A stretch of 42,259 nt of DNA from assembly GCF_000143415.4 (NCBI RefSeq), contig NW_003314371.1:1-42259 (forward strand), given 5' to 3'. Below are positions 13,237-17,738 of the stretch, piece after piece. The translations under genes and the position numbers were made by a program. The notes under the pieces are model-generated. The model was not told where the DNA came from and made no database searches. It worked only from the letters and a program-made list of their open reading frames with translations. This DNA is from Selaginella moellendorffii. Taxonomy: Eukaryota; Plantae; Lycopodiophyta. The stretch's first letter is position 1; each line of letters opens with the position of its first letter.

Positions 13237-14748
13237 TTAGGGTTCTTGCATTGGGGAGCGCCATTCTTTCGATCCTATCAACTGGATCCCAGTCGGTACG
13301 TCTTGGCAATTGCGTACATTGGGCTCGAATCTTGGATCGCTTCGGCGCTTGCAATCGCATCCGTACGGCGCCGCGGCGTGGAAGCAGGGATCCATGGAAA
13401 TCAGCCTGGAGCAATTGGCCGTGGCGCTGCGATCGTCATTGTCAGCGAGGAGGAGCCACGGTTTGATCCCGGCCAGGCCCTGGGCGACGTACCCAAACGT
13501 GGATCCGGGGCTCGTGACGAGCTCGTCACACATTGAGAGCAGTACCATCTCCGCCAGCGCCTTCTCGTCGTGCTCCAAGTTGTCGGTCCTCTGCGATTCT
13601 TCGTGGCTCGGGGAGAGAACTCTCACGACTCCATCCGATTCCAGGGAGAAATCTCGTAGCCTCTGGAAGAAGAACCGATCCAGCGATGTCACGAGCGCCG
13701 TGGTCTTCGATCTGGATCTGTTCGACGGGAGATCAAAGAGGCTGTTTTGGAGGAGGCACTGGATCATCGCTTGGGCGAAGCTGGATTGCGAGTGCGGTCG
13801 CAGGCCCAGATTGGGCGCGAGCTGGCGCATCTGGATCCCGATCAGCTTGGTCGAGTCCGCCATGGAGGCTTTGTAGAATCTAGAAGCTTGATGCCACACG
13901 GAGTTGGATGGAGAGAACAAGTATCGCCCAAGGTGGTGGAACACGACGGTCTCTTGCTCCGCCGGGAAGAGACGATCGAGCTCGGCCTTGAATTGCGGCA
14001 CCGCGTACAAGCTGGGAGCGTAGTACTGGCTACTCCGGATGGACAGCCACGCCACTCGATCGCCCAGCGCGCGCTGCTGCCGCTCGCAGAAGAAATTCTC
14101 GCCCAGGCTTGTCTCGCTGATGATGTCGATGGAGAGGTGGCTGCCGAGCACCCGATCGAGATCGTCGGCGCAGAAGCGATGATCGAACTTGGGCTTGGGA
14201 TCGCCGAGCGCGAATTTGTTGAGGATCTCCCGAGAGACTAGCCAGGAGCTACGAGGGAATGGCTCGCAGAAGAGATTTGCCATGTCCTCGCCGGGATCGA
14301 TGAGGAGCACCCTGTCCGTGAGGAGCGCGTAGAGGAAAGTGGCGGCGATGGACACCATCTTGTTGCCAAGGCCGCTGAAGTTGATCCACACCACGAATTT
14401 GCACTCGCCGGTCGTGAGATTCCCGCGGCGATCCCAGGATTGGGGATGATCTGGAGCGCAGCGCGCGTGGAGATCTTCGTACGAGCGCAGTCTTCTCTCG
14501 AGGTTTGTAGATGGGATGTTGCGATCGATTGCGGCTGCACGGTAGTATAGGTGCCGCTGGAGCCGGCTCTGGCATCGATCGTTCTCCCGGATGGGCAGCA
14601 ATCCATGCAGCGATTCTCTATCGCGAGAAGCTCTCGAGGAGGAGAAGTAACAAATTCCTTTGGCTACCTCCCAGATCCGAAACTCTAGAACCAGCAAGTA
14701 GATAGAAATCGCGAGAATTCCCGGCACTAGCATTTTCGTCGCGCCCAT
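13237..14748 (-). CDS. GT37 galactoside 2-alpha-L-fucosyltransferase (xyloglucan FUT1/MUR2 family), intronless
   Basis: First ATG at 14748 (MGATKMLV) followed by an N-terminal TM helix. Motifs: CKFVVWINFSGLGNKMVSIAATFLYALLTDRVLL, LFCEPFP.SSW, VFHHLGRYLF.PSN.VW, IGIQMR, KALAEM.LLS.CD.LVTSPGSTFGYVAQGLAGIKPWLL, SMDPCFH. Confidence 0.92.
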   Translation of the reverse strand: MGATKMLVPGILAISIYLLVLEFRIWEVAKGICYFSSSRASRDRESLHGLLPIRENDRCQSRLQRHLYYRAAAIDRNIPSTNLERRLRSYEDLHARCAPDHPQSWDRRGNLTTGECKFVVWINFSGLGNKMVSIAATFLYALLTDRVLLIDPGEDMANLFCEPFPRSSWLVSREILNKFALGDPKPKFDHRFCADDLDRVLGSHLSIDIISETSLGENFFCERQQRALGDRVAWLSIRSSQYYAPSLYAVPQFKAELDRLFPAEQETVVFHHLGRYLFSPSNSVWHQASRFYKASMADSTKLIGIQMRQLAPNLGLRPHSQSSFAQAMIQCLLQNSLFDLPSNRSRSKTTALVTSLDRFFFQRLRDFSLESDGVVRVLSPSHEESQRTDNLEHDEKALAEMVLLSMCDELVTSPGSTFGYVAQGLAGIKPWLLLADNDDRSATANCSRLISMDPCFHAAAPYGCDCKRRSDPRFEPNVRNCQDVPTGIQLIGSKEWRSPMQEP

Positions 14749-15033
14749 CCGGCCCAAAGTTTGGTGATCTCCAAACTCCCAAAGTTTGAAATTCCAAAGC
14801 AACGAATATTCTCTGATTTGTGCCAGGGTACGGATACCCTGCCGTCCGTACGTCTCCGAGCTCTCAGGAGCTATGCTGTGCCTCTACGCTAGGGTTTGCG
14901 GCAGCGCAGCGAAGATCCGGGGCGCTCTCCACATCGGTACGTCTTTCAAGCTGCAGGGATCCCGAGCTCCATTCTCCGCGGCGATCGCCTGATCCGGACG
15001 GAGCGGCGCGAGAGATCGGAGGGGAGCGACAAG

Positions 15034-16510
15034 ATGGACAAGGTCGCGGGATGGGTTGGAGGAAGCCTGGCGTCGGCATTCTTCGCGTCGCTGGAGCGAT
15101 CGTCGTGCGTGACCTTGTCGACCACGGACACGGACGACGAGGAGGACGTGCCGCTCGAGGTCCGGGTGGATACCGGGCACCAGAGCAGCGCGTCCTGCGC
15201 GGATCATCAGGGCTACAAGCTGGGGCTCGTCGGCCACGACAAGTTCGTGAGGAGCAATCCCATGTCCGATCGCTTCGGTGTTCTTGGCTTCCACCACGTC
15301 GAGTTTTGGTGTGGCGATGCCTCCAACACCTGGCGGCGATTCGCGTGGGGGCTGGGGATGCATCTGGTGGCCAAGTCGGATCACAGCACAGGGAATCACA
15401 CGTACTGCAGCTACGTGATCAGCTCCCGTGAGCTCGTCTTCGCCTTCACTGCTCCATACTCGTCCAAGAAGGCCGACCAGGAGCTCAGCCAGATGCCACA
15501 CCCGGGCTTCTCATCGAGCGACGCGCGGCGGTTCTTCTCCATGCACGGGCTGGCGGTGCGAGCGGTGGGGCTGCTGGTGGAGGACGCGGAGGAGGCTTTC
15601 CGGAAGAGTGTTCTTGGCGGAGCTCTGGCGGTGTTTCAGCCCCAGGAGCTCACGGACGAGGCCACCGGCACGAAGGCTGTGATAGCAGAGGTGAAGCTGC
15701 TCGGGGACGTGGTGTTGAGATACATAAGCTTGAAGGGATTCTCGGGAGCTTTCTTGCCGAATTACACGCCGGTGGAGAGCCTCCCGCTCACTTCCGGGTT
15801 TGTGAGGCTCAGCTACGTTGCGGCGAATGTTTACAACCTTCTCGACACCGTCAACCACATTGTCAAGTTTACGGGATTCCACGAGGTGGCCGAGTATACG
15901 ACGGACGACGTTGGGACCAAAGACAGCGGCTTGAACACCATGGCTCTTGCGAGCAACAACGAGACGGTTGTTTTTTCGCTGAGTGAGCCGACTTACGGGA
16001 CCAAGCGCAAGTCGCCCATTCAGACTTACCTGGAGCAGAATGAAGGCTCAGGGATCCAGCGCTTGGCTCTTCAGTGCGACGACATTTTTGGGACTGTGAA
16101 TGATATCCGTGATAGGATCGATGCTGGTGGCTTTGAGTTCTTGCCAGCTCCTGGTCCCGAGTATTATGATTCCATGCGCGGAAAAGTTGGCAGCGTTTTG
16201 ACTGAAGAGCAGATACTTAAATGCCAAGAGCTCGGTATTTGGATCGACAAGGACGAGCACGGCATTCTCTTACAAATATTTACCAAGCCCGTAGGAGACA
16301 GGTACGTGTGTCGTATTTCCTTGGCACGATCTAAGTTGTTTTCTACGCAGGCCCACCCTGTTTCTAGAGATCATCCAGCGTTTGACTTCGATCGAAAGCC
16401 AGAGTTTTCAGGCGGACAAGTTCGATGTTGTTGGGAAGGATAACTTTTCGGCACTGTACCGATGCTTGGAAGAGTATGAGAAGACTCTGGATGCAACACG
16501 GCAGATGTAG
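15034..16510 (+). CDS. HPPD: 4-hydroxyphenylpyruvate dioxygenase-like protein with a degenerate active site and an extra N-terminal module; exons 15034-16301, 16351-16510
   Basis: Motifs: FVRSNPMSDRF..FHHVEFWCGDA, HGLAVRAVG, GFHE.AEYTTDDVGT.DSGLN, GTKRKS.IQTYL, LLQIFTKPVGDR|PTLFLEIIQR, GKDNF..EEYEKTL. A 49-nt GT-AG intron restores the frame; TAG at 16508-16510. Confidence 0.88.
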
Positions 16511-16941
16511 CAATGTAAGTTACTGGTTCGTCGACAAGCAGCAATGAGCTACTCAAGTAAACGCTGTGCATCCCCTTGGACGTTGGGTAGGGTCGTTTGG
16601 TTGGGAGGAGTATTTCAAACTTAAATGCGGGGGTGGCTGCAAATATGTGTTACGAAATTGAATCAGATGGTAATGTGGGATGTGGGAAGAACAATCAGAA
16701 AAAAAGAAAAGAAAAGAAGGAAAGTCCTCTACGGAACTACGCAAGAAGAGAACTCAAGGACTGTGCGGGGGAAACTCGTCTCGTACATTTAGCCATTTTT
16801 CTTCTTCATTCATCGGCGATGACTTGAAACGTTGGAGAACGAGTATCAACACGATAGTAGCTACTGCGCGACAAAAAAATTCACGAATAATTTGGAACTT
16901 GAGCAGCGGCAGGCTGGGACGTAAAACCAATCGGTTTTCGT

Positions 16942-17738
16942 TCATGCTTTGATCTTCTTGGGAGCTGCTTGGTTGTCCAAGACGACGTAGCTTCCACACC
17001 TGGGACACTGTGGATTCTTTGGGGACAGCATGACGTACATGAGGCAGCTCTTGCATCCGGTCACTATAATTCCAGACGAGGAGCAGTCGTCGCAAGAAGA
17101 GGTCCGTTTGTGGTCCAAGTTGGTCCCCTCGGCGGCCAGTTTTGATGAAGAAGAAACAGCTGCTAGATTGCGTGGAGAAGCCGGCTTGCATCCTAAATTC
17201 AGTTCCAGGTCCAGGTGCTCTTCCAAGGTGGAAGTCGGGCTGTTGTTTTTCGCGTGGTGAGCTTTGACGGAGGTGGCTCGGCTGCTGTTGCTCTGGAGGA
17301 GATCGAGGCAGAGAGACGAGCTCCGATTCAACGAGCCAGACTGTAGGAGCCGGGGATCGTCAATGGTGCTCAAACCGGTGCTACAGTTGACGAAAGTTAT
17401 GGAGCCAGACTGCGGCAAGAGAAGAACTTTCAGCCAAGAGAAAGGAAGAGGAATGGACAGCAATGAGTTCTTGGTACCTTCAAGTCGAGGCGCTTCTCCC
17501 ATCCGGTTGGAAGCGGTGGCTCTTTTTCGTGATCCAGATGGACAGTCTCCGAGGATTGGCACGGACGGATTGCTGGCGGAAGCGGTCCCGAGCTGTCGAC
17601 CGGCTTTCCCATCATCAGGCTGAGGATCTTCTGGGGGTCCTCGCTCCAGGCGTGTGGCTCCTTGGCACTTGTCGTCTTGATCGAGCTTGTGCACAATTCA
17701 GCAGCCTGCCAGCCCAGCTCCATTGTTGCAACTGTCAT
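16942..17738 (-). CDS. CFL1: CURLY FLAG LEAF 1-like protein (WW domain, EAR-like motif, C-terminal Cys zinc ribbon); exons 17738-17478, 17409-16942
   Basis: PLPTGWEKRLDLK|SGSITFVN..TG.ST.DDPR (WW domain split by a GT-AG intron), LDLELNL, and GCKSCLMYVMLSPKNPQCPRCG. Confidence 0.82.

Follow-up and report, generated by a model that had tools for sequence, protein, structure and literature searches.

Selaginella moellendorffii carries, at positions 15034-16510 on the forward strand of a 42,259-nucleotide stretch of contig NW_003314371.1 (the window, taken at its full length), a homologue of 4-hydroxyphenylpyruvate dioxygenase (HPPD) in which two of the three iron ligands are replaced. The gene, with two exons and a 475-residue product, is probably a transcribed, selectively maintained HPPD paralogue unable to hold the catalytic Fe(II) or to make homogentisate, that is, a pseudoenzyme. 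Loss of HPPD activity is very likely, and there are good grounds for thinking that the copy is kept by selection for a function that draws on the intact fold, the normally conserved N-terminal barrel and an N-terminal peptide module. The marks of a pseudoenzyme occur together in this dead-site copy: catalytic residues are lost from a fold that is kept, the gene is expressed as RNA, and it is under purifying selection.

In plant HPPD the iron is held by the triad His226, His308 and Glu394 (PMC6750108), and residue numbers of this kind follow the Arabidopsis enzyme. The two exons were searched separately against known proteins, with two stored database proteins as full-length references: XP_002990594.2, which equals exon 1 plus an arginine plus exon 2 letter for letter, and SELMODRAFT_91092, encoded by the second haplotype scaffold GL377576.1 and different from the window protein at seven residues. 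Counts were likewise made exon by exon, and the exons were joined only for the comparison with SELMODRAFT_91092 and, in the canonical paralogue, for its allelic ratio of non-synonymous to synonymous rates (dN/dS, or omega). Exon 1 matches Arabidopsis HPPD (PDB 1sp9) over residues 54-422 (E=1e-116) and exon 2 matches it at E=9e-7, with an identity of about 50%. The alignment places Ser260-Tyr261 (AGC TAC, 15811-15816) at Asp225-His226, so that the tyrosine codon TAC at 15814-15816 stands for the first iron ligand, and Arg343 (CGC, 16060-16062) at His308, the second. Only the third ligand is retained, as Glu429 (GAG, 16367-16369), the equivalent of Glu394. A sequence-only reading of the window had proposed the changes RLDH to RLSY and GLQH to GIQR with the glutamate of FLEIIQR kept, along with RKSQIQ to RKSPIQ, LPINEP to FSLSEP and GGFGKGNF to DVVGKDNF in the pocket; each of them is borne out by alignment to the Arabidopsis enzyme (1sp9).

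The damage extends beyond the triad. Turnover in plant HPPD requires a hydrogen-bond network of Ser267, Asn282, Gln307 and Gln293, and the catalytic efficiency of the Arabidopsis enzyme falls about 160-fold when the network member Asn282 is replaced (N282A) and about 3700-fold in Q293A (PMC6750108). The four positions read Thr, Ser, Gln and Pro in the dead-site copy, where Ser315-Leu316-Ser317 (15976-15984) replaces Pro280-Ile281-Asn282 and Pro328 (CCC, 16015-16017) replaces Gln293: two of the four are replaced and a third is conservatively changed (S267T). Both defining features of an active HPPD (EC 1.13.11.27), the 2-His-1-Glu triad (here Tyr261, Arg343 and Glu429) and the network, are thus absent. 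About ten pocket-lining residues are also replaced. All four substrate-contact residues (Phe381, Phe424, Asn423 and Gln379) are retained and, together with Gln307 and Phe392, constitute the half of the pocket that is still present. Since the 2-His-1-Glu site should no longer hold Fe(II) and half of the four-residue network is gone, no homogentisate should be made, and a protein that fails in these catalytic features does not belong among the HPPD enzymes.

How unusual these replacements are was gauged against 119 full-length HPPD homologues from land plants, green algae, oomycetes and amoebae, and against 113 further homologues, fragments included. Asp225, His226, Asn282 and His308 are invariant in all 119 full-length sequences and Gln293 in 118 of them; both histidines are kept in 112 of the further 113, the exception being a partial Humulus lupulus model with H308N. 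The Tyr/Arg pair at positions 226 and 308 occurs in none of the 119 or the 113. Two other models vary at otherwise invariant positions, those being N282T with Q293P in an HPPD-like model of Eucalyptus globulus and P280A with N282S in one of Beta vulgaris. The Humulus, Eucalyptus and Beta sequences may be model errors or additional diverged copies.

Among 106 alignment columns conserved in at least 97% of sequences, SELMODRAFT_91092 departs at 16, all within the C-terminal barrel, while other HPPDs depart at 0-2. A recount that excluded the two diverged copies from the reference set gave 19 changes (D225S, H226Y, V228A, F253Y, S267T, V269A, P280S, N282S, K291Q, Q293P, H308R, M335L, L368W, G415K, C416F, G417D, G418V, F419V and G422D), again all in the C-terminal barrel; K291Q belongs to the window allele only. 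An active-site set taken from PMC6750108 without regard to the changes (H226, H308, E394, S267, N282, Q293, Q307, Q379, N423, F381 and F424) has ten of its eleven residues in conserved columns. Five of these ten are changed, against 11 of the 96 other conserved columns (Fisher p=0.0067), and the N-terminal barrel is normally conserved, in keeping with the earlier suggestion that the active site has taken most of the damage.

The same asymmetry is seen when the protein is compared by domain with the HPPD of the lycophyte Diphasiastrum. Identity in the N-terminal barrel is 73%, within the range of canonical HPPD pairs (58-77%), as expected if structural segments had stayed well conserved, whereas the catalytic barrel falls to 59% (canonical pairs 71-84%) and the C-terminal tail to 40% (52-79%). 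An AF2 model of the dead-site copy, an alignment-driven prediction rather than a solved structure, reaches a pLDDT of 83.4 and a pTM of 0.83, with pLDDT above 90 across most of the core, and Foldseek TM scores by target of 0.90-0.94 against Arabidopsis and rice HPPD indicate that the two-barrel vicinal-oxygen-chelate fold with its C-terminal gate helix is kept. By sequence the protein belongs to the HPPD family, with significant full-length similarity to characterised HPPDs and matches to the Pfam Glyoxalase domains (family models PF00903/PF14696). NCBI and UniProt name the products of both haplotypes '4-hydroxyphenylpyruvate dioxygenase'. They carry this name because the equivalog model TIGR01263 is passed by only 4 bits, at 281.3 against a cut-off of 277; the canonical HPPD of Selaginella scores 339.

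The gene is transcribed and correctly spliced. In four runs, each from a different study, the RNA contigs omit exactly positions 16302-16350, a segment with GT..AG ends, and therefore derive from spliced mRNA. Three of the runs yield a pair of parallel contigs over 15622-15754; the first matches the window letter for letter and the second has all six of the second haplotype's differences, so both alleles are transcribed. The RNA evidence that the sequence-only reading called for is thus at hand, as is the uninterrupted full-length frame with a clean 49-nucleotide intron that it described: the 475-residue frame contains no internal stop, neither haplotype has a stop or frameshift, and the intron is removed precisely.

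An assembly or sequencing artefact at the two histidine codons, which would show as CAC at both, is refuted as an explanation of the losses. The TAC and CGC codons are the same in the second haplotype scaffold and in the contigs of the four independent runs, and 17 more conserved positions are changed as well. Contigs from four studies that cover both codons without difference exclude an assembly error and equally exclude editing to histidine; RNA editing that restored the ligands was considered and rejected, as the RNA contigs carry TAC and CGC.

A second HPPD of S. moellendorffii, SELMODRAFT_165961/174278, possesses all catalytic residues and is changed at 1 of 105 conserved columns. The separate canonical HPPD whose presence had been marked for confirmation thus exists, and homogentisate synthesis in S. 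moellendorffii would be carried out by SELMODRAFT_165961. Its first ~50 residues are rich in Ser, Pro and Arg and contain no acidic residues, and are read as a putative plastid transit peptide. A 63-nucleotide intron interrupts the canonical gene at the same codon and in the same phase as the 49-nucleotide intron of the dead-site copy, and this shared position and phase imply a DNA-based duplication. Flanking synteny between the two paralogues was found nowhere outside the coding region, and a recent segmental duplication is rejected on that account. In a phylogenetic tree the dead-site copy groups with Diphasiastrum (support 86) on a terminal branch of 1.01 (median 0.28), and a sister relationship between the two Selaginella copies is not rejected by an approximately unbiased test (p=0.58).

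Differences between the two haplotypes indicate that the dead-site copy is under purifying selection. Its alleles differ by 11 synonymous and 7 non-synonymous substitutions (dS 0.034, dN 0.0064), an omega of 0.19 that departs from neutrality with a binomial P of 0.0006; one more difference sits in the 49-nucleotide intron, and local non-coding divergence between the haplotypes is about 1.8-3.3%. The canonical paralogue, with 7 synonymous and 5 non-synonymous differences (dS 0.020, dN 0.0044), has an omega of 0.22, so that constraint on the dead-site copy matches that on the real enzyme. When neutral substitution was simulated over the whole gene, with indels left out, 1.5% of replicates remained stop-free at the roughly 37 excess replacements observed in the C-terminal barrel, and the share of open frames ranged from 1.5 to 26% with the excess divergence assumed.

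These data bear directly on early pseudogenisation, according to which catalysis was lost once the copy became redundant and the open, transcribed frame has merely not yet been hit. The canonical copy supplies the redundancy, the terminal branch is long, the simulation leaves some frames open, and no other species was found with an orthologue sharing the Tyr/Arg pair. The allelic omega nevertheless differs from 1 and equals that of the canonical enzyme, both haplotypes are free of stops and frameshifts, splicing is exact in four studies, and the N-terminal barrel and N-terminal module show no excess divergence, though decay should affect all parts equally. Pseudogenisation is accordingly improbable, and the preference of the sequence-only reading for a retained role over neutral decay is upheld by the dN/dS far from 1, by expression of both alleles and by an intact frame of a kind that neutral simulation rarely keeps open at this divergence. 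Its proposed search for orthologues with the same substitutions, by contrast, returned no Tyr/Arg-sharing sequence with word-index queries of exon 1 and of the C-terminal half. In the word-index searches the nearest non-Selaginella match was 66% identical, and the close matches by species included hornwort, ferns, Sphagnum and others.

The part of the protein that precedes the barrels has a history of its own. The N-terminal peptide module (residues 1-40, 15034-15153, WVGGxxASAFFxSLExxSCVxLSxTDxDDE) recurs in HPPDs with a complete set of catalytic residues from Marchantia, Riccia, Sphagnum-type mosses and the alga Spirogloea. The dead-site copy has kept this ancestral module, and the canonical Selaginella copy has exchanged it for a transit-like peptide. 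A profile search of 1.84 billion proteins returned 212 cluster representatives at E<=0.001, and the small proteins that carry the module, which belong to ferns, monocots and eudicots, are mostly 56-180 residues long; those looked up are named 'uncharacterized' and come from Kalanchoe, Dioscorea, Brachypodium, Urochloa and the fern Ceratopteris. The distribution looks like that of an ancient HPPD-attached module that turned into free-standing mini-proteins in euphyllophytes. A word-index search for small proteins with the N-terminal 60 residues gave no candidate, which reflects the limit of word indexing; an ESM Atlas look-up of residues 1-60 gave scores of 0.80, to be taken as leads only, and no papers containing the motif string were found.

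Of the possible functions, the preferred one is a non-catalytic job that would need the HPPD fold plus the N-terminal module. The mechanism would be one of binding, either of a partner through the module and the dimer scaffold or of an aromatic acid in the pocket. The module would link the protein to whatever partner it serves in the active bryophyte HPPDs. According to PMC13260116, the dimer interface is stabilised by the N-terminal domain. In the active site, Arg343 may pair with Glu429 in place of the metal, a pairing predicted from the aligned residues, and the half-retained aromatic pocket (Gln307, Gln379, Phe381, Phe392, Asn423 and Phe424) could hold an aromatic acid without turnover. 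A more specific version, in which the protein is a metal-free receptor for an aromatic acid of the tyrosine pathway, has Arg343 and Glu429 instead of Fe(II) and signals through the N-terminal module, is a long shot.

Dimerisation also raises the prospect of a heterodimeric regulator, in which the dead copy pairs with SELMODRAFT_165961 and tunes its activity or location in the manner of prozymes. Plant HPPDs are dimers, the genome also encodes a canonical paralogue, and the N-terminal domain, the reported stabiliser of the dimer interface (PMC13260116), is the best-conserved part of the dead-site copy; dead paralogues that activate or redirect active relatives are documented (PMC5201418, PMC12727527). 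However, the transit-like N-terminus of the canonical copy and the acidic N-terminal module of the dead-site copy suggest that the two proteins probably reside in different compartments, and the N-terminal barrel has diverged further in the canonical copy than in the dead-site copy (64% identity to Diphasiastrum against 73%). A role as heterodimer partner is therefore doubtful.

A repurposed enzyme, finally, would use the remodelled pocket and a metal-independent or Tyr/Glu-based site for another reaction on a Selaginella-specific aromatic substrate. It would account for purifying selection across the whole body and for the kept half of the aromatic pocket (Q307, Q379, F381, F392, N423 and F424). 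HPPD relatives with altered chemistry exist, among them hydroxymandelate synthase (PDB 2r5v, one of the matches of the 1sp9 search), and a paralogue in the liverwort Calypogeia has altered nine of the same pocket positions with its triad intact. Yet all known catalytic HPPD relatives retain the 2-His-1-Glu triad, arginine is no metal ligand and two of the four turnover-network residues are gone. Metal-free members of this fold superfamily, such as the bleomycin and mitomycin binders, are binding proteins and not enzymes. A new catalytic activity is hence unlikely, and a pseudoenzyme that acts by binding is preferred.

Several points weigh against the pseudoenzyme interpretation or qualify it. 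Loss of catalysis is deduced from the residues; Tyr and Glu can bind metals, and some metal site may persist. The Arg-Glu pairing and ligand binding are suppositions, and L368W, H226Y (Tyr261) and H308R (Arg343) might fill the pocket instead. The RNA nature of the runs is presumed, with the exact skipping of the intron as the evidence for it, and the contigs establish transcription at the RNA level only and give no expression level. The selection estimate comes from 18 allelic differences in a single species, and word-index searches and species look-ups returned no orthologue from another Selaginella species.

The structure of the gene is otherwise simple. The RNA contig of one run starts at 14917, with a loose end that resembles an adapter, and those of three other runs start at 14990; the ATG at 15034 is the first downstream of these starts, leaving a 5' untranslated region (14917-15033) without an ATG. 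As the contig starts lie upstream of this AUG, the transcripts include the N-terminal extension. Exon 1 (15034-16301; codons 1-422 and the first two bases of codon 423) codes for the N-terminal barrel with the peptide module in front of it, and for the greater part of the catalytic barrel at the C-terminal side. The phase 2 intron (16302-16350, 49 nucleotides, GT..AG) splits the Arg codon that follows VGD. Exon 2 (16351-16510) opens with the final base of codon 423, runs through residues 424-475 and closes with the stop at 16508-16510; it contains the third ligand Glu429, a loop shortened by four residues and, ahead of the C-terminal helix, the remodelled gate segment DVVGKDNF. The 3' untranslated region (16511-16941, forward strand like the features before it) is covered by RNA contigs that also span the coding part; a 21-nucleotide insertion allele occurs in it after 16637.

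Beyond this region the RNA contigs continue unbroken into a convergent gene of the GIR1-type zinc-ribbon class (~16942-17694, reverse strand), and either the two transcripts overlap tail to tail or the contigs merge them, probably. Upstream, a divergent neighbour on the reverse strand (13237-14802) encodes a homologue of xyloglucan fucosyltransferase (PF03254), with a contig depth of about 3-7 against about 90-290 for the HPPD-like gene in the same runs.

Plastoquinone and vitamin E synthesis begins with HPPD, which is also one of the main targets of herbicides, and the usual view is that plants have active HPPDs only. The gene was already present in public databases under the name of the enzyme, and no papers linking a Selaginella HPPD to lost ligands were found. 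An HPPD that lacks an iron site and is still conserved and expressed offers a natural experiment on what the fold can do once catalysis is gone, and it carries a warning for annotation, in that automated pipelines will label such a protein an active enzyme. Its retained N-terminal module gives an initial clue to a large group of plant mini-proteins that are still uncharacterised. Were the receptor reading true, the gene would be a living link, and the mini-proteins would descend from, and act in, the control of homogentisate, plastoquinone and tocopherol. The evidence that the copy is genuine and maintained is solid, but for a single-species case with a predicted role the importance is moderate.

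Animal HPDL provides a parallel, being an HPPD paralogue whose pocket has diverged and whose 2-His-1-Glu site is kept. Hydroxymandelate synthase (PDB 2r5v) is another HPPD paralogue that diverged in its pocket after duplication; like HPDL and unlike the dead-site copy, it keeps the 2-His-1-Glu site and remains an enzyme. Among paralogues that have lost catalytic residues, the AdoMetDC prozyme of Trypanosoma brucei (PMC5201418), a TSB-like pseudoenzyme of eudicots (PMC12727527) and the non-catalytic beta-amylases of plants (PMC6394054) are likewise expressed and conserved beside an active copy. Partners or roles have been demonstrated in those three cases, whereas for the Selaginella protein a role is proposed and the two copies are likely to occupy different compartments.

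Set beside Arabidopsis HPPD (PDB 1sp9, 5xgk), the dead-site copy has the same two-barrel fold at about 50% identity and an equal core length, and it keeps Glu394, Gln307, Gln379, Phe381, Phe392, Asn423 and Phe424. It differs in His226Tyr and His308Arg, in a network broken by N282S and Q293P, in a pocket and gate remodelled by V228A, V269A, P280S, M335L, L368W, changes across G415-F419 and G422D, and in the loop before the C-terminal helix, which is four residues shorter. Unlike seed-plant HPPDs, it also bears the N-terminal peptide module. In this respect it resembles the HPPDs of Marchantia (PTQ30333.1), Riccia, Sphagnum-type mosses and Spirogloea, which consist of the module followed by an HPPD body and are 58-62% identical to it overall, but these retain every catalytic residue and are presumably active enzymes.

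The closest counterpart is the second HPPD of the liverwort Calypogeia fissa (CAM6102953.1), also a module-bearing extra copy beside a canonical one. It displays a similar asymmetry (N-terminal barrel 68%, C-terminal barrel 58%, tail about 30%), is changed at 19 of 106 conserved columns (CAM6102953.1, CAM6082240.1) and shares nine changed pocket positions with the Selaginella protein: F253, V269, P280, M335, G415, G417, G418, F419 and G422. In contrast to the dead-site copy, it preserves His226, His308 and Glu394 as well as the Ser267-Asn282-Gln293-Gln307 network; with its iron triad intact, it may still be an oxygenase, perhaps a neofunctionalised one. The liverwort copy is an independent event; where there is a second HPPD, the copy with the module tends to have its pocket released.

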